From sequence record OP123707.1: a DNA stretch of 64,000 nucleotides; one strand, given 5' to 3'. The position numbers and the translations under genes were made by a program. The notes under the pieces are model-generated. The model was not told the origin of the DNA and searched no databases. It saw only the letters and a list, made by a program, of their open reading frames with translations. Within the stretch, counting starts at the first letter, position 1. Every line of letters starts with the position of its first letter. Below, one piece after another: positions 21,801 to 50,405 of the stretch.

Positions 21801-22322
21801 ATGCTTATTATCAATACTGATGGATCCTGCATCGGTGTGTCTGGGCCCGGTCCCTCTGGTTACGGTGTGGTCATTCGAGATGGGGATGTCACCGTAGAGT
21901 TATCGGATGGCTACGCGTGGTCCACCAATAACCGTATGGAGTTATTGGCTCCGATTGTAGCACTAGAAGGACTCCCAGAGCGTCGTAACGTGTCTGTCAC
22001 GACTGATTCGCAATATGTCAAGCAAGGTATCGAACAATGGGTACATGGCTGGCGTAGACGAAACTGGAAGCGCGCAGACGGGGGTCCTGTTAAGAACGAA
22101 GACCTGTGGCGTCGATTATACGACATGACTCGTTATCACAATGTCGAATGGCATTGGGTGAAAGGACACTCTGGTGATCCCGATAACGAACGTTGCGATG
22201 CCATGGCTCAAGAAGCAGCCCGTGCTGAACCTACACAAATAGACCACGGCTATTACACGTACAATGAGAACTTACCGAAATACGACGGTCCTAAGTTCCA
22301 ATGGTGGAAGAAGAAACGATGA
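21801..22322 (+). CDS. rnhA: Ribonuclease HI, bacterial type
   Basis: TDGSC, TNNRMEL, TDSQYV, KGHSG and NERCD supply all E. coli D10/E48/D70/H124/D134 equivalents. Confidence 0.96.
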   Translation: MLIINTDGSCIGVSGPGPSGYGVVIRDGDVTVELSDGYAWSTNNRMELLAPIVALEGLPERRNVSVTTDSQYVKQGIEQWVHGWRRRNWKRADGGPVKNEDLWRRLYDMTRYHNVEWHWVKGHSGDPDNERCDAMAQEAARAEPTQIDHGYYTYNENLPKYDGPKFQWWKKKR

Positions 22323-22609
22323 GTGCAATTTCAAACCAAACGTTAAAGAAACTGTTGAAGAAAGTGAAAGCGGGTGAAACCTTGGACCCGAATGAACAGA
22401 GTGCGGTGTACCGTCATCCCCTGGTAGGTAGCACGATACGTTGCAATTTGTTAACTGAAGCGAATTACAGCCCGTATTGTCCGGTTGGTGAAAAGTGTTC
22501 TATGCCACGTACACACTGGAACGGTGAACAGTTCGAGTGTCCGAGTTGCGGTTGGGTGAGTGCTTTCCCAGACGACTTCATGGAACTGTACAAAGCGACA
22601 CACAAATAA
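22319..22609 (+). CDS. Small zinc-binding protein
   Basis: PYC..C..CPSCGW cysteine pattern; ATGA overlap with the rnhA stop. Confidence 0.7.
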   Translation: MSAISNQTLKKLLKKVKAGETLDPNEQSAVYRHPLVGSTIRCNLLTEANYSPYCPVGEKCSMPRTHWNGEQFECPSCGWVSAFPDDFMELYKATHK

Positions 22610-22667
22610 AGACACGTGAGGTGGGGTCACACCTACCTCACTTATTTTTGTTATTTAAGGATTTATC

Positions 22668-23186
22668 ATGTCTAAACGACTCATTAGTGACATCCATTAT
22701 CAAATCAGCAGTGAATCTTCAGCAGAAAGAATTCATCGCTCTTTTAAACAATTCGTTGGTCATCGTAGTTATGATCTTAAAACTAACCACAACTATTTAA
22801 ACCACCATCCGTGGTACCCGAACATCTGGCATGAATACCATGGCCAAACTTACGGGTCACGCTACGCTATCCGACTTAAAGATGGAACTGAGTTCGGTGG
22901 GCGTTTTGATGATATCTTAGTCAGTTGTTTCGCCGCAGGAGAACACTTCTTTATCCAGAAAGAAACCGCGGATGAAATGAGTGATACTCATAAAGTTCCG
23001 AAGAGTGAAGTGACGCACCTCCGTTTATTGAGCATGGAGGAATGCAAAGGAATCGATGCCGCGGAGACTGCCTGTTTGGAACACGCGAGTCATCAAGAAC
23101 TCCGCCAAGTCTACGGTACCCGTCTTCCAGAAATCGGGATTGGTGACACTGGCAATTTATTGTACTTTAAACCACGAGCACAATGA
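22668..23186 (+). CDS. Hypothetical protein
   Basis: 172-aa ORF with AAGGA RBS after the hairpin at ~22616-22641. Confidence 0.7.
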   Translation: MSKRLISDIHYQISSESSAERIHRSFKQFVGHRSYDLKTNHNYLNHHPWYPNIWHEYHGQTYGSRYAIRLKDGTEFGGRFDDILVSCFAAGEHFFIQKETADEMSDTHKVPKSEVTHLRLLSMEECKGIDAAETACLEHASHQELRQVYGTRLPEIGIGDTGNLLYFKPRAQ

Positions 23187-23187
23187 C

Positions 23188-23670
23188 ATGAAAACAAAGT
23201 TAGATTTAGAAAGTGGGACCGCTAAGGGTTACGTCTCCGTAGACTTGGCGTTCCATCAATGTGAACGCATCCGTGATGTGTTGATCGAACAAAACATCAC
23301 TCCCATCGACCAAGGTCATTTTCACTCTACAATAGCGTACGACAGAGAAGTTAATGGCTCGTGTTTAGAAATCGAGATCGACCCTACTAAGATTTATGAA
23401 GGGGAAGTAGTCGCGATTGAACTGTTGGGACCTATCAAAGATGGGAAACAATCCGCACTGGCATTCGTTCTTAAATCCGATCAATTGCGTGAAGAACATT
23501 TCAAATGGATGGCGGTTGGATTCGATCACGGGTGGGATGATTACATCCCCCATATGTCAGTGGCGTATGACATCGATGTTGAAGAAGGGGAACGCATGAA
23601 AGAGATCTTAAAACCTTTCATCGGAGAGACCTTCTATTTTGACAACTTAAGTGCTGAACCTGTTCAGTGA
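23188..23670 (+). CDS. acb1: 2H phosphoesterase, Acb1-like anti-CBASS nuclease
   Basis: Two HxS/T motifs (FHSTIAYDR, DDYIPHMSVAY) in the arrangement of T4 Acb1/gp57B (IHSTICYSR, DDYTPHITLSY). ATG 23188 follows the previous stop. Confidence 0.82.
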   Translation: MKTKLDLESGTAKGYVSVDLAFHQCERIRDVLIEQNITPIDQGHFHSTIAYDREVNGSCLEIEIDPTKIYEGEVVAIELLGPIKDGKQSALAFVLKSDQLREEHFKWMAVGFDHGWDDYIPHMSVAYDIDVEEGERMKEILKPFIGETFYFDNLSAEPVQ

Positions 23671-23723
23671 TTTTGTGCCCTACCTTAACGGGTAGGGTTT
23701 ATTTTTGTTTTAGGATTATAATA

Positions 23724-24371
23724 ATGAGTAGAAAACCAAAGGGCCGTCGTAACGTGCAAGTTGACCTTCGTCGTCGTCAGAGTCAAAAACGTAACCAAAG
23801 AACCATCGCATTGGTCGTGGCTAAAATCAATGACATGTTGTATTTCTCGGGTTCCCACGTTCACAAAATGGATGGGAAACATTGGTTTCCGTCCCTAAAA
23901 CACCTAGCGCGTCACGATGATCGTAAAACCGCCATTAAGGTCGCGATCCAAACGTTGTGTCAAGAAACCGAATGGCAGCTGCTCCACTTTATTGCAGTGG
24001 ACGTTGGTGACAGCGTTGAGTTGTTCTCGTTCACGAACGTTTTGCATAAGGCCACTTACCTCACCGCCCCAGAGAAAGTCATGGAGTTGATCGATGGTAC
24101 GTTGAAAATGACACAAAAGAACATCGATGACGAAGTAGAGGTTGAAGGCACTCAACTGACCAAATACGCGAAGATCACCGGGTTTGCTTATTACTTATTT
24201 AACTCCACCGGGTATGATATAAAGGGATCCGAAGACGACATCGCCGATTCGTTGTTTGAAACAGGAACATTCGATTACCCGTTTGATCCTAACGAATACG
24301 AACGTTTAACCCCTACTGATTTTTCTGAATTCTTCACTCGTCAAGAACAAGCTTGTATTAAACTATCTTAG
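23724..24371 (+). CDS. Hypothetical protein with basic N-terminus
   Basis: ATG 23724 (MSRKPKGRR) after the terminator hairpin CCCTACC/GGTAGGG and an AGGA RBS. Confidence 0.7.
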   Translation: MSRKPKGRRNVQVDLRRRQSQKRNQRTIALVVAKINDMLYFSGSHVHKMDGKHWFPSLKHLARHDDRKTAIKVAIQTLCQETEWQLLHFIAVDVGDSVELFSFTNVLHKATYLTAPEKVMELIDGTLKMTQKNIDDEVEVEGTQLTKYAKITGFAYYLFNSTGYDIKGSEDDIADSLFETGTFDYPFDPNEYERLTPTDFSEFFTRQEQACIKLS

Positions 24372-24381
24372 AGGAACCACT

Positions 24382-25542
24382 ATGTCTAACTACATTCATT
24401 CACTGGCACAAATCATTGCACAACTACCAACAATTACTGAACAAACTCCGGTACTCAACTTCCAACACCAATTTGTTGCGGACCAAGAAGGTTTCTTACC
24501 ACAATGGTCAGACGTAGCACGAATCGACGGGGTTAAACAAGCGGTCGGTGAATTGAACTGGTTATTTTCAGATCGACCTTCTTTAATGGACCTGCATCCT
24601 ACTGGTTGTCATCACCGCGACGGTTTAGCGGTGTACGAAGACTTGAACATCACTAATGAACTAACTGAAGCTGATCGACATAATCGCGTCATGGTGAAAT
24701 TCATCGAAGCGGGATTAGAGATCAAGAGCATAGAAGACGTTCGTCAGGCTTACATCGACAACGGTATGATGGCGAAACATCTAACCTTGGATAAATGCAT
24801 TGAAGAATCGGGCATCGGTTCTACAGAAACCATTCCAGTGGTGGGCGCTGGCGAAACTGGTCAAAACCACGGCATGTTCTTTTCCTCGGTGGCACCCAAC
24901 GGCGTGTTCTTCTTCCAACATCCTAGCATGATGCCAGATGCGGCTCTGACTTTAGAAGAGAACCTAATCCAAGGTCGTCTTGGTTACACACCAAAGCAAA
25001 CCACATTAAGTTTTGTTAAACTCCCAATCCCTTCTGATAAACGTCTCGAGTATTTCTTTAACGAATTCGAGTGCAACGATGAAGTGGCAGTTAATGTAGT
25101 GAAAGCATTAGTGGAGGGTAAATCGTTCGCTGAAACCCCTGGGTTAGACGTGTACATGGATGACGCCATGTTTGAATCATCAGGTTCTAGCGGTGCTATC
25201 AAACACGTACTAAATATCGTTGAGTGCCCGGAGTTCCATTTGCACGCTAAGTTGCATTTATCGAACCTGTTCCCGATTACAGAGTTCAGTTATGAAGTCC
25301 TGCCGTACATCATCTACGCTCGACAAGTTTCGGACTCCCTCAATGCGCTTTACCAATCATTCACGCTGGACGTCAATGCGATCATCTTGGATGAAGAAGA
25401 AGTTGACTTGGTCAATACGGTATTGGACGAGCATCAGTTCAGTGTTCCATCGGCCTCGTTCTCATTACCGGAAGACTTCAGTTTCGGCGATCGTCCTTTA
25501 ACCATGGACGACCTTAACTTAGTGGGTTACCACGGCAACTAA
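24382..25542 (+). CDS. Thymidylate synthase (ThyA)-fold protein lacking catalytic residues
   Basis: Aligns by eye to ThyA end to end: MSNYIHSLAQII, GELNWLFSD, PSMMPDAALTLEENLIQGRLGYTPKQ, LTMDDLNLVGY. PCH is replaced by PKQ and the QRS-x-D, N and H-x-Y motifs are absent. Confidence 0.7.
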   Translation: MSNYIHSLAQIIAQLPTITEQTPVLNFQHQFVADQEGFLPQWSDVARIDGVKQAVGELNWLFSDRPSLMDLHPTGCHHRDGLAVYEDLNITNELTEADRHNRVMVKFIEAGLEIKSIEDVRQAYIDNGMMAKHLTLDKCIEESGIGSTETIPVVGAGETGQNHGMFFSSVAPNGVFFFQHPSMMPDAALTLEENLIQGRLGYTPKQTTLSFVKLPIPSDKRLEYFFNEFECNDEVAVNVVKALVEGKSFAETPGLDVYMDDAMFESSGSSGAIKHVLNIVECPEFHLHAKLHLSNLFPITEFSYEVLPYIIYARQVSDSLNALYQSFTLDVNAIILDEEEVDLVNTVLDEHQFSVPSASFSLPEDFSFGDRPLTMDDLNLVGYHGN

Positions 25543-25552
25543 ATTAATTCAC

Positions 25553-25564
25553 ACCTATATTACT
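25553..25564 (+). promoter_or_regulatory. Putative early promoter ACCTATATTACT
   Basis: Exact copy of the 13842 motif, upstream of the chaperonin gene. Confidence 0.75.
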
Positions 25565-25628
25565 CAGGTGTCAAAGCCTGAGTAATAATTTTTATTACTT
25601 TTATATTAACCTTAATTAAGGAATCAAC

Positions 25629-27188
25629 ATGTACGTTAATTACAAAGAAACCAAAGACCTAAAAAGCACTGTCGTTAATGAAGTATGTGGTGCTGTTGTA
25701 GCGACCATGGGTCCCGACGGTCAAGTGGTGGTTTGTGATAAATCTGGTATTCCTCATCCAACCAAAGATGGGGTGACTGTTGCGAGAGCCATGCGCTTCG
25801 AAGACAAGTCAAAAGATTTGATCGCTACCATGATAGCTGAATGTTGTTTGCGCACTGACCGCATTTGTGGGGATGGTACGACAACCACTGCTTTCTTATT
25901 GAGAGAATTCTATCGTCGTTTCCACACAGACATTAACTTCCGTACTAAGAAGTTGTTGCGTCAATACACGGATGAAGTCATCGAGATACTGGACCAAATG
26001 GCTGTGCACGTTACCATCGACTCAACTCTGTTGCGTGACGTGATGTTAACCACCAGTAACAGTGATGAACGCATCGTGGACAAAGTGCTGGAGATCTATC
26101 GTGAAAACCCACATCTGCCTGAACTTGAACTGGCGGACTCTGGGGATGATGAAGACCACGTTCAATCGAAACAAGGTTGTACTTGGCCGGGTGGTTTCTC
26201 TTCACCAGACATGTCTAACCTAGGCACCGGTACCGTAGAGACGTTCACAGGTCGAGGTGATTACCGTCCGGTGTTGCTGTCGGATAAACTGGCGGGATTA
26301 GAGAGTAAAGATGAAATCAACAAATTCATGGAGCTGACTTCAGAGTTCATCAATGCAGGTGGCACATACTTAATCATTTGTCGTGGTACCGAACCACAAA
26401 CTGAGCAAATCATTAAGTCCATGAATGCTTCCATTGGTCGTGTGGGTTACAAAGTCATTAAGATCAATGCCGCGGGTTCATCTGGTGTGTCGATCATCAA
26501 TGACATCGCTTTGGTGTTAAACACAAAGATGCAGGTAACGTTGTTGGAAAACGAAGCAGTTTACGGACTGGATATCGTACGCCCTTCAATCGCAGTCAGC
26601 ATTTCTCAGTTCCGTGTTGCGGGTTACTTAGCAGAACACCAAGCGGCCCTCGACAAAGCCATCCTAGCGGTGAAGGATGTTATTGGGGAACTTGACGTAG
26701 AGCAACGTAATAGTGCGTTAGGTAAAATCATCAAGTCTCGCCTTCAAATCCTATCGGGTGGTAGCGTTAAGTTGTACGTTGGTGGTGTAACGGAATCTGA
26801 CATCAAAGAACGTCGTGACCGTTATGAAGACGTAGGTCGTGTTTGTAAGTCGGCGTTAACGAATGGCGTGCTGCAAGGTTGTGGTTACACGTTGGCACAA
26901 ATCGCTGCGGTATTAGAAACTAAATATCCAGAGTGTCACGTTGCTTCAACTTATGCGTCGGTATTACGTCAACAGGTCGTTTACTTGATGCAACAAGACT
27001 TCGACAAAATCACCGAGTACACAAACTTAGCGACCGGAGAAACAGGAGCCACTCCGGGTGAGATCAATGTATGGGATGCGGCACTGGCTACTCGCACGGC
27101 ATTAGAAGCGGGGGTATCTATGGCGATCATGCTGGCGGATACTAACTCACTGATTCTGAATTCTCGTTTGAGTGATGTGCGTTTTTAA
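25629..27188 (+). CDS. groEL: Phage chaperonin (GroEL-like)
   Basis: TMGPDG, TKDGVTVA, GDGTTTT, RYED (D398 equivalent), GVLQGCG. No GGM tail and no groES in the window. Confidence 0.93.
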   Translation: MYVNYKETKDLKSTVVNEVCGAVVATMGPDGQVVVCDKSGIPHPTKDGVTVARAMRFEDKSKDLIATMIAECCLRTDRICGDGTTTTAFLLREFYRRFHTDINFRTKKLLRQYTDEVIEILDQMAVHVTIDSTLLRDVMLTTSNSDERIVDKVLEIYRENPHLPELELADSGDDEDHVQSKQGCTWPGGFSSPDMSNLGTGTVETFTGRGDYRPVLLSDKLAGLESKDEINKFMELTSEFINAGGTYLIICRGTEPQTEQIIKSMNASIGRVGYKVIKINAAGSSGVSIINDIALVLNTKMQVTLLENEAVYGLDIVRPSIAVSISQFRVAGYLAEHQAALDKAILAVKDVIGELDVEQRNSALGKIIKSRLQILSGGSVKLYVGGVTESDIKERRDRYEDVGRVCKSALTNGVLQGCGYTLAQIAAVLETKYPECHVASTYASVLRQQVVYLMQQDFDKITEYTNLATGETGATPGEINVWDAALATRTALEAGVSMAIMLADTNSLILNSRLSDVRF

Positions 27189-27263
27189 TCAATAAAGATG
27201 TGGGTTCCTACGGGGACTCACATTTATTGAGGTTTATTTTTTTGTTAAAAGGAGAACAATAAC

Positions 27264-27539
27264 GTGAAGAAGTTTTTCAATTTTCTCGTCTGGTGGTGCA
27301 AAGAGAAACTGGCAGGCAAAGAATTAAAAGAATTAGAGACTTTAAAACTTCGTTTGAACGATCTGGAAACTTGGTGTTCCTATGACCCTTCAGTATCCGC
27401 TGGAGCGCGTTGGGTGAAAGATCCGAACTCTTACCCGAGTCAGTGTCATGGTCCACATGGTTCCATCGAGGACTTTCGTCGTTACTTATCGGAACATTTC
27501 CATCCATCCGCACCTGTTAAAAGTGCATGGAGGGAATAA
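27264..27539 (+). CDS. Hypothetical protein
   Basis: GTG start with AAGGAG RBS. Confidence 0.7.
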   Translation: MKKFFNFLVWWCKEKLAGKELKELETLKLRLNDLETWCSYDPSVSAGARWVKDPNSYPSQCHGPHGSIEDFRRYLSEHFHPSAPVKSAWRE

Positions 27540-27541
27540 CA

Positions 27542-27847
27542 ATGATGAAAGCCGTATTCGCTAAAGCACGATTAAACAACACCTACGAAGTGCTGACGGA
27601 TTCTCGTGAACTCAGCCGCATCATGAGTATGTTGACGGTCGGTGTAATAGCGGGAGCATTAGGATTCCTTTGGTTGCAGGGAGCAATCGCGTTGGGGGTC
27701 ATTTATTTACTGATTATGGTTTCTGTGGGGAATGTCTACGAAATAAGAATCAAACCTTTTCAAGAATTATGGTTTACTAAAATAGCAATGGTCTCTGCTT
27801 CGATCGTGGGGTGGGTGATCTGGTTAATATTGGAGCGACTTTTATGA
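27542..27847 (+). CDS. Small membrane protein (~3 TM)
   Basis: GGAGG RBS; three hydrophobic segments. Confidence 0.7.
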   Translation: MMKAVFAKARLNNTYEVLTDSRELSRIMSMLTVGVIAGALGFLWLQGAIALGVIYLLIMVSVGNVYEIRIKPFQELWFTKIAMVSASIVGWVIWLILERLL

Positions 27848-28137
27848 ACAAAATGACGGTATTATTAAAGACAGAACGTGAAGCTTGGGGTTTATGGATT
27901 TTGTCTTTAGTTGCGGTAGTCATGTGGGGGTTGGATCATGCATGGGTGATGAATGGATTAGCGATCGCCATTGCACTGGAATTGCTTTATGTCTTCTTTA
28001 ACCCTAAAGATACGTTCCATGAGATTTTAAGAAGCTCGGGTTTCTTTACGATTAAGGGTATGTGGTTCGACGTACCGATGTGGTTGGGGGTTTCTTGGTT
28101 GTTCCATAACGGGGAGATGCTGAGAGGCTTATTATGA
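27844..28137 (+). CDS. Small membrane protein (2-3 TM)
   Basis: ATGA-coupled to the previous gene; hydrophobic segments WGLWILSLVAVVMWGL and WVMNGLAIAIALELLYVFF. Confidence 0.7.
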   Translation: MNKMTVLLKTEREAWGLWILSLVAVVMWGLDHAWVMNGLAIAIALELLYVFFNPKDTFHEILRSSGFFTIKGMWFDVPMWLGVSWLFHNGEMLRGLL

Positions 28138-28406
28138 TCACCGACTTAGAAGGCAATCCTTCGAACTGGTTGCGTTGGACCATCGGGGTGGTGTTGTTGT
28201 GTCTTGGGATGATCTTCGGTCAATGGTGTATCGTGGTTGGAATTTTGTCTACCTATCTCACCGCGGTCGTTCTGGGGTTCACCACGTCCGGTGAAGAGTA
28301 CGCCTTGGACATCAGTAAAGACACCTTCATCACTTTCAACAATCTAGGCATTTCGATTGCGGTCGGATTATTAATTACTTTCACTTTACACATAGCGGGA
28401 CTCTAA
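28134..28406 (+). CDS. Small membrane protein (~3 TM)
   Basis: ATGA-coupled; three hydrophobic segments; stop overlaps the tdk start (TAATG). Confidence 0.7.
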   Translation: MITDLEGNPSNWLRWTIGVVLLCLGMIFGQWCIVVGILSTYLTAVVLGFTTSGEEYALDISKDTFITFNNLGISIAVGLLITFTLHIAGL

Positions 28407-29002
28407 TGAGCAAGATCTATTTTTACACTAGCGCCATGAACTCAGGCAAGACCACCACAGCCATCCAAACAGCCTTTAATTATAAAGAGCGTGGGATGTA
28501 CCCTTACGTCCTTAAACCGGTCGTGGATACTCGTGACGGCTGTCCTCGTACGCTATCTAGTCGTAGTGGAGCTAAATGGGATAACTGCATTCCTTTCCCG
28601 AAAGAAGGGTTGGGTGAGATGGAGTTGTGGTTACGTAATCCTGAGCAAGCTCCAGACGTCATCATTATCGATGAAGTGCAGTTCATCAGTGTTGAGCAAA
28701 TTGAAGCCCTGAGTTTGATTTGTGAAGAACGCGGTATCCCACTGTTATGTTACGGTCTGCGTAACAACTTCCAGGGTGGGGGTTTCCCAGCGTCTGATTG
28801 GCTATTGCGTCATGCATCGAGCATCAACATCGTGAAAGGGATGTGTTGGTGTGGGAAGAATGCAACCCACAACATGATGGTCATGGATGGGAAAGCGCAC
28901 TACGGTAACCCGGGTGAATCCGCAGTGGTGGTGGGCGGTAATGAAACGTATCATGCGGTGTGTTTAACCCACTTCCGTAGCGGTGAGTTCAAACGTCCTT
29001 AG
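28406..29002 (+). CDS. tdk: Thymidine kinase (TK1/bacterial type)
   Basis: SAMNSGKTT P-loop, IIDEVQF, CYGLRNNFQG, zinc ligands CWCG and YHAVCLTHF. Confidence 0.95.
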   Translation: MSKIYFYTSAMNSGKTTTAIQTAFNYKERGMYPYVLKPVVDTRDGCPRTLSSRSGAKWDNCIPFPKEGLGEMELWLRNPEQAPDVIIIDEVQFISVEQIEALSLICEERGIPLLCYGLRNNFQGGGFPASDWLLRHASSINIVKGMCWCGKNATHNMMVMDGKAHYGNPGESAVVVGGNETYHAVCLTHFRSGEFKRP

Positions 29003-29008
29003 CGGCAT

Positions 29009-29017
29009 GATTTTATG
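29009..29017 (+). promoter_or_regulatory. Putative late promoter GATTTTATG
   Basis: Recurring motif, ~100 nt upstream of the Ig-domain virion-type gene. Confidence 0.6.
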
Positions 29018-29120
29018 GTCTAGGGGCTGCTACCCAGCTCCTTGATTGCAGCTAAGTCCACTTAGAACTTTCCTGGGGAGGATTCGTTAAGAGTGTTCCC
29101 CAAGTTACAAGGAGATATTA
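29018..29120 (+). promoter_or_regulatory. Structured 5' leader with anti-SD
   Basis: Three consecutive stems, plus CTCCTTG (29038-29044) complementary to the RBS CAAGGAG (29108-29114). Confidence 0.45.
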
Positions 29121-30632
29121 ATGAAACACATCCGACAAATCCTTTTAGATAAAGCTGCGTTAATTCGTATTTCGCTAGCCGAATCCAAAGGGGATGCCGC
29201 TGACATCGCGCTTACTAAGTCTCGGTTTGAAAACCTAACCAATGACGAAGTTGAGTATTTAAGCATTACGGAGTCCCCGACGATCTCTCGCCGTTTTATC
29301 GGTAAGATTCGTATTTCAGCTCGAGACAGTTTCGAGTTTGTCCAGAAGTGGTCTCCAGGTGATCTCGTGACCATTCTTAACACCGAAGGAACTACTGTCA
29401 TTCCTTCTTACGACAGTTTCGATGAGTTCGTTGCAGTCCCAGGAAAATATTTGGTCGAAGACATTAATGAATTGTGTCTGGTGGTTAAAGACGTTTCTAC
29501 GATTGAAGAGATTCAAGAACTCTTAGGTTTTGAATTCGAACCGGGTGAATTAGAGTTAAATCTGAAACACCTGAAAATCGATTCTCCGATCGTCGAAGGT
29601 ACCATGCCGATTAAAGAGCAAATTGCTACTCCAGACGGCACCGTGACTGATGGCTCTGCTATTGACGTGGTGGATGAAACCGGTGGAACCTTCATCATTC
29701 CTGCCAACCCGCACGCCAGTGAACAACCGATTACCATTGAACGTATAAACGTTCCGCCTCCTTTCAGTGACGAGATCAACAACAAAGCAAAAGGTCGTTT
29801 TGTTGGAGATCACCGTAACAATGAAGTTATTGAAGGTACCTTGGACGCTGAGAAGAAATGGAAACCGGATCTTAAGGTTAAACACCAAAAAGGTAAAAAA
29901 GTAAAACTTGAAGTTACCGTTGGTGTGGATGCTGATAAAGTAACTAACGAATATTCAGTGGAATACATTAATGAAAATTGGCGTATCGATGCATACAGTG
30001 TGGAAGCACCTGTTCGTCGTGTCGGTCATCCATTTGATTTAGTGGGTACGGTTATTGGTGATCTAGGCTCGACTCCATGGGGTGACGATACTACAGACCC
30101 AGGCATTTTCATAGAAGAGGCTGGAGAAGACGCGGTTGAGTTTGCGTTTGAACCAGACGATTCGTTCGACCTTGCACACATCCCTGTGGTTGAGGGTGAC
30201 ATGACGGTTCGTTTTGTTTGTGGTTTGACTCAAGACCTCAACTACTTCACTGAAACCTTCACGATCTTGGGCCCTCTCCAAGAAACTGATTTGACGTTCG
30301 GTGCTTTAGCGGTAGATCAAACTGAAGTGGAAGTATCCGTACCGGTGACGTTCACAACCACATTGCTTTCAAGCGATGGTCTGACTATGGAGTCGGCGGT
30401 TGTAGACGTGGTGGTGGATGGTGTAGTGTTGGGTCAAGTCTCCCCGGATGCAGAAGGTAACATCACCTACGTGTTATCTTCTTCAGACACTCCATCAACT
30501 TATGACGTTTTACTACGCCTTGGTGCACAGGAATCAAATGCAGTTACCCTAACTGTAGGTGGTGGTGGTGCTGAAGGTCCTACTGGTGTAGAGATTGAAG
30601 ACAACGGTCAAACGTCTATTTTAGTTGAATAA
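29121..30632 (+). CDS. Acidic virion-type protein with C-terminal Ig-like domains
   Basis: The N-terminal ~165 aa resembles 33024..33479. The C-terminal half has Ig-like strand patterns (APVRRVGHPFDL; QTEVEVSVPVTF..STYDVLL..SNAVTLTV). Confidence 0.65.
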   Translation: MKHIRQILLDKAALIRISLAESKGDAADIALTKSRFENLTNDEVEYLSITESPTISRRFIGKIRISARDSFEFVQKWSPGDLVTILNTEGTTVIPSYDSFDEFVAVPGKYLVEDINELCLVVKDVSTIEEIQELLGFEFEPGELELNLKHLKIDSPIVEGTMPIKEQIATPDGTVTDGSAIDVVDETGGTFIIPANPHASEQPITIERINVPPPFSDEINNKAKGRFVGDHRNNEVIEGTLDAEKKWKPDLKVKHQKGKKVKLEVTVGVDADKVTNEYSVEYINENWRIDAYSVEAPVRRVGHPFDLVGTVIGDLGSTPWGDDTTDPGIFIEEAGEDAVEFAFEPDDSFDLAHIPVVEGDMTVRFVCGLTQDLNYFTETFTILGPLQETDLTFGALAVDQTEVEVSVPVTFTTTLLSSDGLTMESAVVDVVVDGVVLGQVSPDAEGNITYVLSSSDTPSTYDVLLRLGAQESNAVTLTVGGGGAEGPTGVEIEDNGQTSILVE

Positions 30633-30719
30633 CAAAATCCCTAACGGGAACAGTGGTTTAAAAAGACTATAAGTAGAATAAGGTAGGAGGATAAAACCTC
30701 CTACCTTATTTATTTTAAA

Positions 30720-30731: not shown

Positions 30732-30772
30732 TGAGTGTAAAGGACGTCAATTTACACTTTTGGGGAAGAAAC

Positions 30773-39264: not shown

Positions 39265-39265
39265 G

Positions 39266-42053: not shown

Positions 42054-42104
42054 TTGAATCAAAGGGGAGTTAATAGCTCCCCCATTATTAAAGGATTTAT
42101 AACA

Positions 42105-42959
42105 ATGAACAATTTGGCTACTGAAATCATCTACACTGACCACACTCGTAAATCCGCTAACGGTATTTATATTTACGCGGACTCAAGTTTGTATGGCAAT
42201 CGATTAAACGTCATTGTTTCAGATGACGAAACGGAACAAACCGAGTTGGGGATGGAAATCGATAACGTGGATTGCGGCTTAACCGTTTACGATGAAATCT
42301 TAGAGACCAACATCGTACTGGCTACGATCTCCACCCGCAGTTTAAGTAAACTGAGTGACAACTATTTCATCAAAGTTCGTTTGTTTGATAATGAAGATCA
42401 GTTGGTGGGAGAAGCGGGCCCATTTTACGCGACCATTGATGAAGAGATTGACGTGGGTTCTATCATCGTTGAACGTCGCACTAAATCGTTGTTGCGTTTA
42501 AGCACAATGTTGAGTGCGTTGGACTACATGGTGGGTGAAGAACAAGTGACCGTAATGGACACTTACATCGGTGGATGTCACTTTGAACTGAACATTACTG
42601 AGGGCAACTACGTCGCCACCATCAGCGAAGAACTGGACATCCAGTTGGAAACTATTCGTGCGTTAACTTCGGTAGATTTGATCCGTAAGTTGAACGACAG
42701 TGACCACGGTGGGTTCATACTAGACTCGGGATTGATCTTTGATCGATTCATTAAACCGGTTCAGTTTGGCGAAGACCGATGTTTAGCTAACCGTTATCGA
42801 ATGATGGAGGACTTTACTTACAAAAACATCGACATGGTGTACACGTTCGGTCTAGCGAAAACAAAGCGAGATTCTGCGTTCCTAAAAGAACTTAACTCAC
42901 GTCCTTACAAATACGCTTTTGTAAAAGAAAAGGAATCGGTGGATGAATCAGATGTCTGA
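42105..42959 (+). CDS. Hypothetical protein with N-terminal Ig-like domain
   Basis: ATG 42105 with AAGGA RBS; beta-rich N-terminus with DNYFIKV strand. The C-terminal RLS..L..G..FE pattern is shared with 43844. Confidence 0.6.
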   Translation: MNNLATEIIYTDHTRKSANGIYIYADSSLYGNRLNVIVSDDETEQTELGMEIDNVDCGLTVYDEILETNIVLATISTRSLSKLSDNYFIKVRLFDNEDQLVGEAGPFYATIDEEIDVGSIIVERRTKSLLRLSTMLSALDYMVGEEQVTVMDTYIGGCHFELNITEGNYVATISEELDIQLETIRALTSVDLIRKLNDSDHGGFILDSGLIFDRFIKPVQFGEDRCLANRYRMMEDFTYKNIDMVYTFGLAKTKRDSAFLKELNSRPYKYAFVKEKESVDESDV

Positions 42960-43266
42960 ACCTTTTGAAATTGTCGACTTCCAAGATTTCTTAGCCAAAG
43001 AACTCAGTAAGTTGGGGCAGCCTTCTAAATACACTACGTTACCGGAGTTGTATGAGGAGTATTCGGTTCCTTTTGGGAAATCCATGTTAGGTTACTTAAA
43101 ACAGTTTGATGTGGATTCTCGTTGGTTACACGACGCTTACGGATTAGATTTCCGTAAGAACAAGAAAGGGAATTGGGACGTGTTTTTGAATGAGATGGTG
43201 GGAGAGTTTCTTCATTTCAATTCAGGGGACCAACCAATCATGACTTTAACTTTAACTGGTGAATAA
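42943..43266 (+). CDS. Hypothetical protein
   Basis: 107-aa ORF overlapping the previous gene end; AAGGA RBS. Confidence 0.65.
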   Translation: MNQMSEPFEIVDFQDFLAKELSKLGQPSKYTTLPELYEEYSVPFGKSMLGYLKQFDVDSRWLHDAYGLDFRKNKKGNWDVFLNEMVGEFLHFNSGDQPIMTLTLTGE

Positions 43267-43326
43267 GTTTTAATGGAGTGGTCAATTAATAGGTCACTCC
43301 TTATTTTTTTAATCATAGGACGTATT

Positions 43327-43851
43327 ATGAAAGTCGATCTTCGACCAGCCGAGGCGTTGTTCTTAACGTTAGATGCCGCGGTTAAAATGCTAAGCAACCC
43401 TGAGTCCAAATTGAAAGAACTCGTGATGGAATCCCATCAACGTAAATACAACATGGTCTTGGTGGATGGGTTCAATCCTAAAGAGTGTTGGTTCCGTGAT
43501 TTTAACATCACGTTGTGTTTGTCGTATGACTCTATACGACAAGAACGCATTGCTTTATTTACACTCCGAGATGAGGACTTAGCGAACCACGAAAATGTCA
43601 TCAGCATTGACATCAGTGACAACACACGTCCTTTGTCGGAACACTGGGAAGCGTTGTTGCGCATCATGGCGTATCATTACCCAGAAACTTTACAACGTAT
43701 TGCGGAGTCCGGGGATCACATCGATCGACACCGCGTGTACGACGAAATAGACCGAGAACGCGGTCTTTACAAATTTTGTGATTTCCAAAAATCGCAGTAC
43801 GAATCTTTAGTAAGTTTATTTACAGACTTAGAGGAACCAGAACATGACTAA
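43327..43851 (+). CDS. Hypothetical protein
   Basis: ATG 43327 with AGGA RBS; HWEALLRIM resembles QFEALLRLL of 44652. Confidence 0.65.
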   Translation: MKVDLRPAEALFLTLDAAVKMLSNPESKLKELVMESHQRKYNMVLVDGFNPKECWFRDFNITLCLSYDSIRQERIALFTLRDEDLANHENVISIDISDNTRPLSEHWEALLRIMAYHYPETLQRIAESGDHIDRHRVYDEIDRERGLYKFCDFQKSQYESLVSLFTDLEEPEHD

Positions 43852-44671
43852 ACGTTTATTCTCATTCACCACCAGCAAAGAACTCCACCATCGTGGTGAA
43901 ACCATTTCCGTTCACCCTAACCACCGTACCTTAGGTGAATTGGAAAACTCTTACGAACTCCATGCCGAAGTTCTTATCAACGGGGAACCGATTGGTGGTG
44001 GAATGGGGTTGCATGATATCAACTACTGTCTTATGGATTACGAAGAAGATCTATTGGGTAAGACTTACCAACTGAACGTTCGCATCAAACGCGGGGATGA
44101 GATTGTCCGTGTCAGTGATACGATGGAGATGGAGTGTGGCACTCTATTGTCGGTCGAGACGCAAGACACTATGGCGCTAGCTTCGGGCTACGATTGGATC
44201 AGTCGTTTATCTCGCGCACTGGCGTTGATTCATGAGTCTTACAGTAAACGTGAAGACGAAGACCGAATTAAGTTATTCGGTTGGGAAGTTGGTCCTTACT
44301 ACTTTGAGTTTTACTGGGGTGGTGAGCAGATGGGTGTGAAAGGCATTGAGCTGGATGTTTCTCCAACTCACAACATGGATAACATCACCTCGTTCTTCAT
44401 TGACTCTTCTAGTATTCTCTCTGTTTCTCGTAGCTTCAATGAGATTTTCTATCATGAAGTGAAAGCGTGGATGGTTCATCCGGCGTTCCGTATTATGATG
44501 GTGGAACAACCCATCGGGAATGACCTTATTCACCACTACCAATTCTTAGTGGCGATTATCGCGGCCGATTCCCCAGCGTTATCTCTTCCAATGGGTCTGC
44601 GAACACTGAGTCGTGTAGCTTCTGAAGAATCAAGAAAAATTGGAGTGACTAATGGATATCAAGCTGGCTAA
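43844..44671 (+). CDS. Hypothetical protein with N-terminal Ig-like domain
   Basis: ELHHRGETISV..AEVLING..KTYQLNVRI strand pattern; GAGGA RBS. Confidence 0.6.
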   Translation: MTKRLFSFTTSKELHHRGETISVHPNHRTLGELENSYELHAEVLINGEPIGGGMGLHDINYCLMDYEEDLLGKTYQLNVRIKRGDEIVRVSDTMEMECGTLLSVETQDTMALASGYDWISRLSRALALIHESYSKREDEDRIKLFGWEVGPYYFEFYWGGEQMGVKGIELDVSPTHNMDNITSFFIDSSSILSVSRSFNEIFYHEVKAWMVHPAFRIMMVEQPIGNDLIHHYQFLVAIIAADSPALSLPMGLRTLSRVASEESRKIGVTNGYQAG

Positions 44672-45317
44672 CCCGACGGTACAGTTGGGTTCGTATTTGC
44701 GTTTCCGGTTATCGAACTTTGAAAGCAATAAACGTACCACGGTAAATGCGGGGTTGGCGTTACATGGTCAGGGTCGTCCAAAAGCGTGTTCCATACTGCG
44801 TTACCCAATCAATGGACAATACGTTTGTTTCTTGGATACTTCTGGGTTGCCTATCGGGAATCATAAGTTAACCCTATGGCCAAGCACCGGGTATTCTGAA
44901 CACGTCAATGTTCACTTCGATGTACTGATCCAAACTCCGATGAGCCATGAACTCGGGGCCCAACTAAAACGACTTTACTGGTATTTAGAACAATGGTTAG
45001 AACGGGTGGAGGAACTGGATACCACGATAGTGTTGTCCAGACTCAAGATCACTCCTAATCCGGTAACTAAAATGTTGGTGTGCAGTCTCCCGAACTCTCA
45101 GTATTACGTGGAACTTTATCCATCCGAATTCCTTACTCAGTTTGAAGCGTTGTTGCGTTTACTGGGTTCGCGATTCGATACGTTTGAGAAAGGATTCACC
45201 GATACCGATTTTGTAGAGTTACGTGCTCACTTACCGGGGTTAGGGACGTTGAACATTCCTAAAAATTTGAATGGGAATCGACTCGTTTCTATCTTCAATC
45301 GTTTTAACTTGGCTTAG
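44652..45317 (+). CDS. Hypothetical protein with N-terminal Ig-like domain
   Basis: NPTVQLGSYLRF..YVCFLDTSGLPIGNHKLTL..VHFDV strand pattern. Confidence 0.6.
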   Translation: MDIKLANPTVQLGSYLRFRLSNFESNKRTTVNAGLALHGQGRPKACSILRYPINGQYVCFLDTSGLPIGNHKLTLWPSTGYSEHVNVHFDVLIQTPMSHELGAQLKRLYWYLEQWLERVEELDTTIVLSRLKITPNPVTKMLVCSLPNSQYYVELYPSEFLTQFEALLRLLGSRFDTFEKGFTDTDFVELRAHLPGLGTLNIPKNLNGNRLVSIFNRFNLA

Positions 45318-45326
45318 GGGTGCAAA

Positions 45327-45950
45327 GTGTTAATCAAGAAAATCGGAAGCATCGTGGATCTTCCATGCAACATCAAGGACTATCGTAAAGGGTCTATCCT
45401 TCAAACGGAAGGTGGAGAGTTGGTCATTCAAGTCGCGATGGATAATCGTCCTGTTTACTTCCATTTCCCTACATCTGTGTGTGGTGACCCTGAGTTGTCT
45501 TTACTCTACATTCGCGGTGTCGCTAACCATTGTCCTGAAGCGGAAGTTTATGGTGACTTTTCTCCAGAGGTGGTGAGTTTTCTAAGAGACCACGATCTTT
45601 ACGTGAACATCATTCCTCCAGCGGTCTTCCATGTGATCAAACAGTTTAAGTTGGTCCACACTGATGACTTGGAATGGTTGAACATGGACTGTGGGTCGAA
45701 GGTGGGTTTCGTTAACCGTATCGATGGACATATCGTGGTGTCTTACGATGAAATGCGAGATTTTCCAGTCACTATCGTTGGGACAGGGGTGCTGTCGGAC
45801 TACGTAAGTTTGATCAATGCGTTAACCAATCTCAAAGTCTACACCAAGAGCTCCACGGTGTATGGGGTGTTCCCATTAGGACTCCTTCGTCAATTAAAAG
45901 AAAAAGGTATTCCTTTTGAAACGTTAGAGGAAAGCTCTGATGAATACTGA
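45327..45950 (+). CDS. Hypothetical protein with two copies of a ~100-aa alpha/beta domain
   Basis: GTG start. Halves align (RPVYFH..LLYIRGVANH..VYGDF..FLRDHDL / FPVTIV..SDYVSLINAL..VYGVF..QLKEKGI). Confidence 0.6.
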   Translation: MLIKKIGSIVDLPCNIKDYRKGSILQTEGGELVIQVAMDNRPVYFHFPTSVCGDPELSLLYIRGVANHCPEAEVYGDFSPEVVSFLRDHDLYVNIIPPAVFHVIKQFKLVHTDDLEWLNMDCGSKVGFVNRIDGHIVVSYDEMRDFPVTIVGTGVLSDYVSLINALTNLKVYTKSSTVYGVFPLGLLRQLKEKGIPFETLEESSDEY

Positions 45951-46284
45951 AGCTCCTGTTCGTTGGAAGGGGGTGGAGTTCTGGACGTATGACCCCGAGC
46001 GTGAAGACGATCGCAGAGAGATCCGTGGTTTGGACATCGATAACTTCATCTATTGCGGGATGGGAGAAGACACACACGAAGAACGAGTCTATCTTTATCT
46101 GGCGGATGAAGAACGTCGTATCCCGGTAGTGATTTGGGAATACATGGGACGAGCATCTTTAGAACGATACCTAGGATGTTTGGCTCAGGTCGATCGAGAG
46201 CGTATCGTGGTGTTTGTTCCGAACCTCATTGCTTTTACTGTGATGTTAGATGACATGAACATTCCGTACCAGCCTTGTGCATAA
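45940..46284 (+). CDS. Hypothetical protein, third copy of the 45327 domain
   Basis: IPVVIW..LERYLGCLAQ..IVVFV..MLDDMNIPY. Confidence 0.6.
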   Translation: MNTEAPVRWKGVEFWTYDPEREDDRREIRGLDIDNFIYCGMGEDTHEERVYLYLADEERRIPVVIWEYMGRASLERYLGCLAQVDRERIVVFVPNLIAFTVMLDDMNIPYQPCA

Positions 46285-46290
46285 TGCAGA

Positions 46291-46334
46291 CATAATCCTA
46301 CCCTCCCTGCCTTTCGGTGGGGAGGGTAGTTATG
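46291..46334. terminator. Bidirectional terminator
   Basis: CTACCCTCCC/GGGAGGGTAG stem between convergent genes. Confidence 0.8.
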
Positions 46335-46347
46335 CTGTTTATTTTTT

Positions 46348-46980
46348 TTATTGCTGACCACGAATTTGTTCTTCGAGTAATGCAATATATTTCCGGTCTT
46401 CGATCTGTTCTTTTTCTAACTGTTTGATGCGGATAGCGTCAGAAGCAGACTTAGTCACTTGGGACTTACGTTTGTTTTCAAAGACTTCGGCTTGTTCACG
46501 GGAGACGTAGGATTTGGTTGGAACGGTCCCAACAAACACTTCTGGGTCGTCAACACCCGTGATGGCTTTGGTTTGGTCTTTAAGGAACACGCGGTAAGTG
46601 TTCAGCTGATCTTTCAACGACGGTGGTACCGCACCCAAGTCTACGATGAAACAGAGACGCTCATAAAGCACCCCATCGATCAAAGGGAATGACTTGAAGT
46701 AAGTAGAAGGAATGTGTAACGTCGGGAGACCATCGGCTACTAACGTCACCACCACACCTTTGGATGACTCTAAGTCGTTCATTAAACTGGCGGATTCGGC
46801 AGACGTGAGTCCGACTGGGTTACCCACTAACAGATGCGTGTTAACTTTAGCGATGTTCAGTTCATCGACGGTACGGAGGGCCTCTACCGTGTACATCAGG
46901 TTGGGATCACAAACCTGATCAAACGGCTCCAATGCCTCAAATGAACCACTCGCTCCTATTTCAGGAATGATGTTATTCAT
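46348..46980 (-). CDS. Conserved phiKZ-like protein, probably virion structural
   Basis: 210 aa, coupled to the upstream virion-type gene; C-terminal coiled coil. Confidence 0.55.
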   Translation of the reverse strand: MNNIIPEIGASGSFEALEPFDQVCDPNLMYTVEALRTVDELNIAKVNTHLLVGNPVGLTSAESASLMNDLESSKGVVVTLVADGLPTLHIPSTYFKSFPLIDGVLYERLCFIVDLGAVPPSLKDQLNTYRVFLKDQTKAITGVDDPEVFVGTVPTKSYVSREQAEVFENKRKSQVTKSASDAIRIKQLEKEQIEDRKYIALLEEQIRGQQ

Positions 46981-48304
46981 TAATTACCCCGTCTTGAACC
47001 ATCTGCCAGTACGTTGGGCACAAGTAGTTGACTTTACCGATACGTTTCGTAACATAAAGAATGCCATTACGTTCCAAACGTTTTACCCCCGCCGGTGGAA
47101 TACCATCTGGTTTCACGATTTCACCTGCCGCCAACAACCCTTCCATCTGACGAATGAAGTAGAACGTATCCAGTTCCAAACGACCATTGTCGTAATCGTC
47201 CGCGCTCAAGATTTGGTAATCTGGGTAGATCTCACGAATCTTGATCTTACCACCGTAGTTTTTCGTCTTCGCAACAAAGGCCACTAGGGTGTTATTGTAC
47301 ATGAACGGAACGGTCTGCAAAGATTTTATGAGATCTTGGCTATTAATGGTCGGACAGTACTTGGTAGGGAGTTCTAGCATTTGTTCAAAATCTCCGATAG
47401 GAGAAAAAGAACTGGCTGCTTTGGTTTCATTGATCATCCCCACCGTGTTCCAATAAGGGACACAAGTAAACTCGAGAGGGTTGAACAAGTCAGGCAAATG
47501 AGGTTCCCAGGTCGTCTCGTCGAAATTCGAGTTCTTCAGAATTTCTTCTTTGATGGTTTCGTACAATTGCTCATCAACGTCAGAGGCATTGCCGTAAATG
47601 ATTGCGGTGAAATAGATCGGTACCGTTTGACCATTCGTTGTGTCAATGAATTCGAATTTCACTGGTTTACGCGCAGTGTACGGGTACTTCTGGTCACCGG
47701 TTAAATCATTAATGCGCTCTTGAATGATGTCGGGTGTTTCTTTCATCAAACGCTCTTGGATTTCCAAGTGGTTGTGATTGATGAGGTAGTCCATGTCTTC
47801 AGGAGGGAGAGGTAACGCCACTAGGATTTCACGGAACGGATATTCAGCAGTGAAGTAACCCGTTGCATACCAAATACGGGCTGTGACGACGTCTTCTTCG
47901 GTGGTGAATTTCATTTCTACGAACGAAGGTAAGTAGATCGCTCCGTTGGTTACCATTTCACCAACGCTAACAATTTCTATATCTAACGTGAACGTAGCGC
48001 GGAGCTGCTGCAAACACGAGCTGGCATCGGCGGTGAGGTTTCCTCGTTTGCCTTGATCGAGCAACCAAACACTGATTTCGTTTTGGCGATCAATCATGGC
48101 TTGATCAATGAACACTTCCACTTCTTCGGAATCGCGGGAGTAGAAGTTGATTAAGATCGTTGTTCCATCTTTACTAGGGTAATGGTTAGGATCTTTACTA
48201 AAGGTGAGTTCCGACCCCGTTGGTTCGCCAATGGGAGACGTTACCAAAGGGTGTCGATCGTGTAGTTCCGGAATGCTTCCGAACGATAAGAAGTTAACAA
48301 GCAT
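46973..48304 (-). CDS. Probable virion structural protein (phiKZ core block)
   Basis: ATG 48304 (MLVNFLSF; SPIGE motif) with GTGGGA RBS; GATTCTATG late-like motif at 48380-48388. Confidence 0.6.
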   Translation of the reverse strand: MLVNFLSFGSIPELHDRHPLVTSPIGEPTGSELTFSKDPNHYPSKDGTTILINFYSRDSEEVEVFIDQAMIDRQNEISVWLLDQGKRGNLTADASSCLQQLRATFTLDIEIVSVGEMVTNGAIYLPSFVEMKFTTEEDVVTARIWYATGYFTAEYPFREILVALPLPPEDMDYLINHNHLEIQERLMKETPDIIQERINDLTGDQKYPYTARKPVKFEFIDTTNGQTVPIYFTAIIYGNASDVDEQLYETIKEEILKNSNFDETTWEPHLPDLFNPLEFTCVPYWNTVGMINETKAASSFSPIGDFEQMLELPTKYCPTINSQDLIKSLQTVPFMYNNTLVAFVAKTKNYGGKIKIREIYPDYQILSADDYDNGRLELDTFYFIRQMEGLLAAGEIVKPDGIPPAGVKRLERNGILYVTKRIGKVNYLCPTYWQMVQDGVINE

Positions 48305-48344
48305 AATAGTTTCCCACTTATAAAAACAATAAGGTGTGTTAGCG

Positions 48345-48767
48345 ATGTTTATAGTTCTAAGAGAACTGGCGGACCGTTTCATAGAATCCACGGTCCCTAA
48401 GGTTCAAGGAGAGACATACGAAGAGAAGATTCGGGTAGTTTTAAGGTGGACTATCTTTTACGCAACCATCATGACGTGGTTAGTCGTGGGCCTAGGCGTG
48501 CAGTACACTCATGCCATGTTGGGGAAGCAAGAATGGGAGGAGACCAGTGCGGTCATCCAACAAATTTTTGCAGTAGAAGATAACCCTTTAAAGTCATTCG
48601 TGACGATTAACCGGAGCCTAACGGCCCGCTTAGAAACCATTCAGGATGAGCACATAGCTACGTTAAAAGAGCGTGCCATTTTAATCAGAGATATCGAAAG
48701 GTTGTCCCAAGATAACTTAGAGCTGAAACGGTTCATAGAGACCGGTCAATGCACAAAGAAGGATTGA
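48345..48767 (+). CDS. Single-TM protein with C-terminal coiled coil
   Basis: VLRWTIFYATIMTWLVVGLGV hydrophobic span; AAGGTG RBS. Confidence 0.6.
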   Translation: MFIVLRELADRFIESTVPKVQGETYEEKIRVVLRWTIFYATIMTWLVVGLGVQYTHAMLGKQEWEETSAVIQQIFAVEDNPLKSFVTINRSLTARLETIQDEHIATLKERAILIRDIERLSQDNLELKRFIETGQCTKKD

Positions 48768-48872
48768 TCGATTTACCGATTACTCGAGGTGTTCTCCTTT
48801 AGGGAGGGCACCTCAGTATTTTGTTACCTATCAGTCAATATATTGGTCATCAAAATAACTAGTGGTAAAACA

Positions 48873-50405
48873 ATGGCGACACTAAAAAGAAACATGGTAG
48901 TTTACATTGGCATGGGAACTACCACCTTCGCTGCTAAACGTAATAAGCCTGAGCATAAAGAGTTTTACACCGCACTGCATGCTTATACTTATGACCCGAC
49001 AGTAGAAGGAAAGAAACAGTTAAAGAAAAACGTCCCGGCGACAATGGGTTATTGGACATCCACCACGACCACAGCAGGCACCGTCGTTAACCAACAAGAT
49101 ATCCTCAGCGGGTATTCTTCCAGTTGTGCTACGGAGTGGGAAGCGTGGATTTCTCTATTAGAACAGTTGCGCATTTACATCGAGTCTGTAAAGAAAGAAA
49201 CTGTGATTGAGAAAAAAGAAGAAGTGGAGTACGACGTAGAATGGACTCGCATCCTCTTTATTCCTAATGACCCGTGGTTCTACCGTATCATGGAAATGAC
49301 GGCGGCACGCAACAACAAATGCCCTGATGGTATTTGGGACCGCATCAAAGCATTGCAAGAGTTCTTTAAGGATTACTTACCGACCTCGAATAGTGTGGAT
49401 GTGAAAGTCTCGTTAGCGAAAGGTGGGTTAGGTGCTAAACGCTTAGCGGAAGAGATGGGCTTAAGTGACGTCATGACTTTATGGGGCGACAAACCAGAGT
49501 GTTATCTGACCGCACAACCGTTAAAGCAATACGAAAACCCAGAAACCGGTTTACCTAAGATCATCAGTGGTAACCGTTGGTACTTCCGTACAGGAATGGG
49601 TACTGATTACTGGGAAGAAATCGAAGGCCACCGTCGTTACCAATTCGGTAAGGTGGAGAAAGGGAAACACTACTACGGGAAACTGACACCGGACGTGACC
49701 TACTCAGCTCTGTTTGTCAAAGAACCGATTTCCTACTTCGACCGTTTGTTCCGCTTTACGGAAGAACGCACAGAGAACCCACGTGAGCTGTTGTGTACCG
49801 GAAATATGCAGTACGTAACCAGTAAAGGTGTGGCGCGTTTGATTGACACGTACCCAGGGGTTCGAAAAGGGAAAGACTTGGTGGTGCCATTCGTGGTAGG
49901 TACTAAAGAAGACCCTACGTTGATTGAACTGATTGATCCACCGGGGTTGTCGTTCATGATTGTGGAATCCATGGACCGTATTGACTTAACGTTCCAGTGT
50001 TGGACCAACCGTGATGAAAATAACCGTTACGGGGACAAACAAGAGTACGTGGACATCACTGACATGTTCTATGTAAAAGAAGAGAACAAGAAAGGTGACG
50101 TGAAGCTGAAATTGAATCCAGCGTTCAAGCCTAACGAGATGGTCATGCGTTATACGGCACATCACCCTAATGCGAAGTGTCCGGTTCCGATCATGTTGAG
50201 TGTGGGTTACGATGTACCAGAACGCAACTGTTTTAACTCGGTAACCGACCCAGACGTAAAAGTGTGGCTGAACTTAGACTTCACCAATGATCGTTGTTTG
50301 ATCTATCGTACCATCATCGAGACCAAAGAGTGGACGTATGTGTTCACTTCGGCTTCGGCGAACGTGCGTGTGTTGAACAAGAAAGAATTGGGTGAAAGCA
50401 AATAA
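48873..50405 (+). CDS. phiKZ gp155-type long RNase H homologue with degenerate active site
   Basis: Family motifs recognised from recall: HAYTY, ATEWEA, LIDPPGL, VDITDMFY, YDVPERN. The canonical D-G, T-D-S and N-x-x-A-D acidic residues are missing. Confidence 0.6.
   Translation: MATLKRNMVVYIGMGTTTFAAKRNKPEHKEFYTALHAYTYDPTVEGKKQLKKNVPATMGYWTSTTTTAGTVVNQQDILSGYSSSCATEWEAWISLLEQLRIYIESVKKETVIEKKEEVEYDVEWTRILFIPNDPWFYRIMEMTAARNNKCPDGIWDRIKALQEFFKDYLPTSNSVDVKVSLAKGGLGAKRLAEEMGLSDVMTLWGDKPECYLTAQPLKQYENPETGLPKIISGNRWYFRTGMGTDYWEEIEGHRRYQFGKVEKGKHYYGKLTPDVTYSALFVKEPISYFDRLFRFTEERTENPRELLCTGNMQYVTSKGVARLIDTYPGVRKGKDLVVPFVVGTKEDPTLIELIDPPGLSFMIVESMDRIDLTFQCWTNRDENNRYGDKQEYVDITDMFYVKEENKKGDVKLKLNPAFKPNEMVMRYTAHHPNAKCPVPIMLSVGYDVPERNCFNSVTDPDVKVWLNLDFTNDRCLIYRTIIETKEWTYVFTSASANVRVLNKKELGESK

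Follow-up and report, generated by a model that had tools for sequence, protein, structure and literature searches.

Why would a phage encode two proteins of the RNase HI family, a large one with a degraded active site and a small one with an intact site? The question is raised by a stretch of 64,000 nucleotides (the window) from Vibrio phage phiKT1028 (OP123707.1; Gorgonvirinae, Tidunavirus), a nucleus-forming jumbo phage. Window coordinates correspond to the record position minus 62000. The large protein of 510 amino acids (aa) is encoded at 48873-50405 on the + strand and is deposited as a 'hypothetical protein' (GenBank UVD32180.1). It is an orthologue of Rhc, the RNase H-clamp protein. 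The small protein of 173 aa, encoded at 21801-22322 on the + strand, is a stand-alone RnhA-type RNase HI with a basic C-terminal tail. A preliminary description of the sequence had placed both genes correctly and had proposed that the small enzyme displaced the catalysis of the large protein. The distribution of both genes agrees with a displacement: a related phage genome has either an intact Rhc or a separate RNase HI, never both. The best explanation, which is considered probable, is that Rhc keeps a nuclease-independent role at the polymerase, with a captured RNase HI supplying the RNase H activity in trans.

Rhc was characterised only in 2025-2026. It is a core protein of chimalliviruses, named gp155, PHIKZ155 or Nlp2 in phiKZ and gp190 in Goslar. 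The RNase HI domain at its N-terminus is active in vitro, and the domain at its C-terminus has PCNA and the 9-1-1 clamp as relatives. The clamp binds the split B-family DNA polymerase, on its C-terminal subunit, together with the emerging duplex and boosts polymerisation (PMC12571901, PMC13648687, PMC13648698). In phiKZ, the catalytic-dead D102N variant fully rescues the knockdown, and the essential role is nuclease-independent (PMC12571901). The Goslar variant D119N rescues replication partially and late transcription not at all (PMC13648698). The two model phages differ on this point: the nuclease is dispensable in phiKZ and is needed in Goslar for late transcription, on the same chain as the clamp.

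Identity and catalytic columns of the large protein

The family phrog_3265, annotated as ribonuclease, matches phiKT1028 Rhc end to end (residues 4-506, E 3e-134). An HHalign comparison of two profiles, one of its relatives and one of intact Rhc (phiKZ gp155 and Goslar gp190 among them), covered 479 columns with a probability of 100% and E 9e-73. The homology to gp155, suspected in the preliminary description, is thus a full-length match. The ATG at 48873 is the best reading of the start: homologues begin at the same MATLK... residues, and the GenBank start agrees.

The AlphaFold2 model of the protein has a mean predicted local distance difference test score of 90. VIA-align recovered two folds. 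The N-terminal domain (residues 1-215; 48873-49517, + strand) has an RNase HI fold, with Z 9.2-10 for residues 2-208 to 4ibn, 3aly, 1goa (E. coli) and 2qk9 (human) at a root-mean-square deviation of 3.3-4.8 over 131-166 aligned residues. The C-terminal domain (residues 222-510; 49536-50402, + strand) is sliding-clamp-like: residues 223-500 resemble the 9-1-1 subunit 3ggr_B (Z 6.8) and the clamp of African swine fever virus (8i6g, Z 6.5). These are the same clamp relatives that are named in the Rhc papers. Foldseek with the whole model returned 9-1-1, beta clamp and PCNA as top rows, at a weak E of about 2e-3, and no RNase H rows. The polymerase-interface residues M346 and F478 of phiKZ align to L359 and V498 of phiKT1028 Rhc, and these positions are hydrophobic throughout the clade defined below. 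A polymerase C-subunit orthologue is encoded by the phage; it was found with phiKZ gp50 as query, the Pfam family DNA_pol_B having missed these divergent polymerases. As part of the explanation given above, and with the same confidence as the whole of it, the 510-aa protein is probably the subunit of the split chimallivirus DNA polymerase that is called RNase H-clamp. With its clamp domain, phiKT1028 Rhc is predicted to bind the polymerase C-subunit.

The catalytic columns were assigned by MAFFT alignments bridged by intact Rhc and by HHalign columns, which were mutually consistent. In all RNase H enzymes, the aspartate D10 binds both metal ions, as established for E. coli RNase HI. Its column is occupied by G13 in phiKT1028 Rhc. 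E. coli D70 is replaced by N132, H124 by A182 and D134 by A192; only E48 is kept, as E88. The column of N132 is that of phiKZ D102, and the residue occupies the site of the laboratory catalytic-dead mutations phiKZ D102N and Goslar D119N. The acidic site is thus degenerate as first described, except for the retained equivalent of E48. Likewise, the motif LFIPND, read before as a counterpart of xTDS, has no aspartate in the D70 column, although D133 follows directly after N132; this aspartate is not conserved among close relatives. No complete catalytic site was found, the columns reading G-E-N-A-A. Also missing is the basic-protrusion motif W..NW...VKN.DLW, which intact Rhc and bacterial RNase HI share.

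Profile searches gave the same picture. Pfam RNase_H had no match in the 510-aa protein. In a six-frame scan of the entire phage record with PF00075 (E<=1), the small gene was the sole match and Rhc had none. A clade profile reached human RNase H1 among PDB sequences only at E 0.3. The RNase H domain of phiKT1028 Rhc is a likely pseudo-enzyme that would have lost its activity.

The degeneration extends far beyond this phage. Among 123 distinct Rhc sequences, 27 read D-E-D-H-D and 96 do not. The degenerate ones keep E48 in 29 cases, D70 in 10, D134 in five, D10 in three and H124 in none. At most two of the four carboxylates are kept in any of the 96, and the retained ones differ between subclades.

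The degenerate domain is under purifying selection and is not decaying. Synonymous divergence (dS) was saturated in most pairs, and the dN/dS ratio omega was taken from three close pairs only: it was 0.03-0.08 for the N-terminal domain versus 0.013-0.025 for the clamp. Identity in the N-domain divided by identity in the clamp gives 0.58 for the degenerate clade versus 1.34 for intact Rhc, a relative constraint about 2.3-fold lower. The best-conserved part is a lysine-rich beta2-beta3 hairpin (consensus EGKKKL.KDVPTT.GYYTGN), which is Rhc-specific and common to degenerate and intact proteins.

Such selection would also be expected if the domain were still a nuclease, for RNA in hybrids or for another substrate, working through non-canonical residues and making the small enzyme redundant. 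The retained E88, D133 beside the D70 column, and other fairly conserved acidic positions (D76 89%, E45 82%) could contribute to such a site, and 4ibn, which matches best in structure, is an RNase H1 whose active-site motif is rearranged. However, D10 is absent from 93 of 96 sequences and H124 from all 96, no sequence has more than two of the carboxylates, and the set that is retained varies between subclades. Together with the lost basic protrusion and the lowered relative constraint, this makes a surviving nuclease very unlikely.

Distribution and descent of the stand-alone RNase HI

The small protein matches PF00075 with E 1e-41 and 142.8 bits, the cut-off being 25.8. It aligns with E 3e-55 to the RNase HI of Shewanella oneidensis (2e4l) and with 9e-51 to the E. 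coli enzyme. The alignment with the Shewanella RNase HI spans residues 3-152 and has a single gap of two residues, after the DGS motif. The catalytic residues D7, E47, D69, H123 and D133 are all intact, in agreement with the compact RnhA-like enzyme first described, and the basic protrusion is kept. The RNase H part of phrog_3265 also matches the protein (E 2e-24). Cellular RnhA of Shewanella, Alteromonas, Vibrionaceae and Enterobacterales are 55-60% identical to it, and this identity to characterised enzymes suggests that it cleaves the RNA of RNA:DNA hybrids.

The phylogeny of Rhc was calculated from the clamp domain only. The degenerate proteins formed one clade with a long stem, nested among intact Rhc and with a value of 100 in the Shimodaira-Hasegawa-like approximate likelihood ratio test (SH-aLRT). 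The sister lineage is G034, a phage from IMG/VR, and next come Desertfox, Proteus phage 10 and SA002; Rhc is intact in all four. The clade comprises EL, OBP, RisingSun, pEt-SU and the vibriophages pTD1, PDCC-1 and Aphrodite1; many Aeromonas, Klebsiella and Shewanella phages were placed in it by similarity. The stem of the clade measures 1.19 changes per column in this tree: the clamp evolved fast on the branch of nuclease loss as well.

The co-occurrence of degenerate gp155 homologues with rnhA was then read from genomes. PF00075 was searched in 32 near-complete IMG/VR records with relatives of the window Rhc. Exactly one stand-alone match was present in 31 of them, always located in a small open reading frame (ORF; the open frames span 160-206 aa) and a long way from Rhc, which itself had no match. 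The 32nd record is G034, with an intact Rhc and the sole PF00075 match inside it. Named phages with intact Rhc showed matches only inside Rhc in 15 of 15 cases (Goslar, phiKZ, RSF1, SPLA3, Desertfox, BUCT660, Noxifer, pir03, Machina, RP12, Proteus phage 10, SA002, Xoo-sp14, RTH11 and Asesino). The two states are complementary: a stand-alone RNase HI is found in 31/31 near-complete genomes with degenerate Rhc and in 0/16 with intact Rhc (the 15 named phages and G034).

For the intact side, this census is complemented by a collection-wide result. A tblastn search with the small enzyme in 50,697 phage records matched 1222 records at 1222 places, and none of these records had two RNase HI-like places. 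The query does detect the intact Rhc N-terminal domains of sampled phiKZ-, SPN3US- and Agrican-like phages. An intermediate genome with both an intact Rhc and a stand-alone RNase HI was not seen, and none of the complete chimalliviruses examined was without any RNase H. The combination of dead Rhc and separate RNase HI is a property of the whole old clade, a single event and not a feature of phiKT1028 alone.

These data also bear on whether RNase H activity is needed at all. It could be dispensable in the clade or supplied by the host, the phage rnhA being a neutral passenger; the phiKZ D102N mutant, which fully rescues titre and replication, is in line with this (PMC12571901). In so old a clade, a passenger would not have preserved the five catalytic residues in each genome, and the presence of RNase H in every complete chimallivirus examined argues against dispensability. 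This reading is highly improbable.

A tree rooted with Rhc N-terminal domains placed 25 phage stand-alone copies in one clade (SH-aLRT 90) among proteobacterial RnhA. The clade is phage-only and far from the Rhc N-terminal domains. It divides into pTD1-like, OBP-like and joint EL/RisingSun-like subgroups, in broad agreement with the clamp tree, a pattern of vertical descent. D-E-D-H-D is present in all 32 stand-alone copies examined. In the simplest history, one rnhA was captured and the Rhc site was lost once, on the same branch, followed by vertical descent: the clade ancestor would have acquired a single bacterial rnhA that has been inherited since. The preliminary description had called this a non-orthologous displacement. 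The displacement agrees with the 31/31 versus 0/16 distribution and with the published nuclease-independent role of Rhc; both enzymes belong to the RNase HI family, and the displacement is therefore xenologous.

The phage enzymes carry basic extensions. In phiKT1028, the C-terminal tail comprises about 20 residues (approximately 153-173; window 22257-22319), and the aligned cellular RNase HI have no such tail. A tail of tryptophan plus lysine/arginine ends the pTD1-like and OBP-like proteins (QWWKKKR, PWFRYKR). EL- and RisingSun-like proteins have a K/P-rich extension at the N-terminus. The basic extensions may be an adaptation for import or for nucleic-acid binding.

Gene neighbourhood and proposed division of labour

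The small gene had been assigned to an accessory block. This was not confirmed: its neighbourhood of ligase, RNase HI and 2H phosphoesterase is conserved across the clade. In the window, an NAD-dependent DNA ligase (15356-17323, + strand; Pfam DNA_ligase_aden E 4e-43; phrog_3869 E 1e-188) precedes it. Downstream, at a distance of about 0.9 kilobases and two ORFs, follows an Acb1-like 2H phosphoesterase of 160 aa (23188-23670, + strand; Pfam Acb1, anti-CBASS, E 2e-13; phrog_755). The order of the three genes recurs in EL and in the IMG/VR phages G026 and G011, and RisingSun shows the part with RNase HI and phosphoesterase; the distance between these two is similarly short in all four.

The Acb1-like neighbour, syntenic in other clade members, gives some weight to the earlier alternative that the small gene is an accessory one or acts in counter-defence, directed for example against the RNA:DNA hybrids of retrons and unrelated to the decay of the Rhc site. 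A cytoplasmic enzyme of bacterial type would not need to enter the phage nucleus. Typical defence-related genes are patchy, however, and this gene is one vertically inherited clade across a divergence of Rhc down to about 32% identity. It is linked to the NAD ligase, it is carried by all 31 genomes with dead Rhc and by none of the 16 with intact Rhc, and no phage record has two copies. A counter-defence function is unlikely.

The ligase is common to the dead-Rhc clade and to the intact sister G034; Desertfox, Proteus phage 10, SA002 and phiKZ gave no ligase match. For an empty-site comparison, the ligase of G034 lies at the contig end. A scan for flap endonucleases (PF02739) had no match, Goslar included, and is hence uninformative. 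Directly upstream of the RNase HI gene, a 333-aa protein (20774-21775, + strand) contains an HTH_18 domain of the AraC type (E 1e-9), an unusual feature in a phage equipped with RNA polymerases of its own. The final 22 bases of the RNase HI gene are shared with a 102-aa ORF (22301-22609, + strand) that has two CxxC pairs and gave no Pfam or PHROG match. A 386-aa protein (24382-25542, + strand) matched no Pfam family at E<=0.01. The Rhc gene had been described as lying beside UvsX. A UvsX-like recombinase gene is indeed close (51319-52755, + strand; phrog_97 E 7e-40), with one intervening gene on the strand opposite to both (50458-51264; phrog_7524). At the end of the window, a large tail-fibre-like protein (60580-63960, - strand; phrog_3201) contains an internal endolysin/lysozyme-like segment in residues 743-942 (phrog_181, E 1e-41).

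Rhc of this clade has lost the carboxylates that bind metal, the histidine of the active site and the substrate handle of the basic protrusion, and has kept the RNase H fold, the lysine-rich hairpin and the clamp domain, which are all under purifying selection. In the preferred explanation, it would still bind the polymerase C-subunit and the emerging duplex and boost replication, as in phiKZ and Goslar. The stand-alone RNase HI would remove primers and R-loops in trans, presumably on phage DNA inside the phage nucleus. It could plausibly act with the neighbouring ligase, primer removal being followed by sealing. A non-catalytic role of the large protein, as first proposed, fits these observations. 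Since the basic-protrusion motif has been lost too, binding of hybrids by the dead domain, which had been suggested as such a role, is not a favoured reading.

Several points weigh against this explanation. The correlation comes from a single loss and a single gain, both on one branch, and not from independent repeats. In phiKT1028 Rhc, E88 is retained and D133 adjoins the D70 column. The dead domain is strongly constrained and therefore has some function. The main tension comes from Goslar, where an RNase H domain that was targeted to the nucleus but had no clamp failed to rescue transcription (PMC13648698). An enzyme of bacterial type that has a basic protrusion itself may need no clamp, or the dead domain may recruit the enzyme.

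The latter can be extended to a tentative and rather doubtful model in which the dead domain links the pieces again. It would dock the stand-alone RNase HI at the polymerase, or sense hybrids for it there, as a two-piece Rhc; the basic tails would then bring the enzyme into the phage nucleus or onto Rhc. If true, this would explain the strong selection on the dead domain, the joint requirement for nuclease and clamp in Goslar, and the absence of any chimallivirus without RNase H.

Comparison with known systems

Rhc itself is already known. The 2021 jumbo-phage survey reported RNase H1 in all group 1 phages. In the literature searched (the Rhc papers, this survey, the core-genome paper and a 2025 review), neither a naturally dead Rhc lineage nor its pairing with a separate RNase HI was mentioned; the pairing is apparently undescribed there. 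The pattern of the clade suggests that nucleus-forming phages never give up RNase H activity and that this activity need not be fused to a polymerase subunit. Members of the clade, for example EL on Pseudomonas aeruginosa, are ready-made systems to separate the two functions. The annotation 'ribonuclease H' misdescribes the chemistry of Rhc in this clade, and the window copy was left without a functional name.

With the characterised Rhc (phiKZ gp155, Goslar gp190 and PhiPA3 gp176), the phiKT1028 protein shares full-length homology, an RNase HI fold joined to a clamp-like domain, the lysine-rich beta2-beta3 hairpin, and conserved, hydrophobic interface positions. The characterised proteins have an active D-E-D-H-D site, and their genomes are without a second RNase HI. 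In contrast, phiKT1028 Rhc reads G-E-N-A-A, has neither the basic-protrusion motif nor a Pfam match, and is accompanied by a separate RNase HI.

This RNase HI resembles bacterial RnhA (E. coli 2rn2/1rch; Shewanella oneidensis 2e4l) in 55-60% of its residues, in the catalytic residues and in the basic protrusion. It differs in being phage-encoded, in belonging to a phage-only clade and in its basic C-terminal tail of about 20 residues.

The dead domain of Rhc has a counterpart in the RNase H-like domain of Prp8, where an RNase H fold with an incomplete metal site is likewise kept under selection within a larger nucleic-acid machine. Prp8 domains were among the structural matches of phiKT1028 Rhc (VIA-align, Z 5.3-6). 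There is no sequence relationship, and the resemblance is one of principle only.

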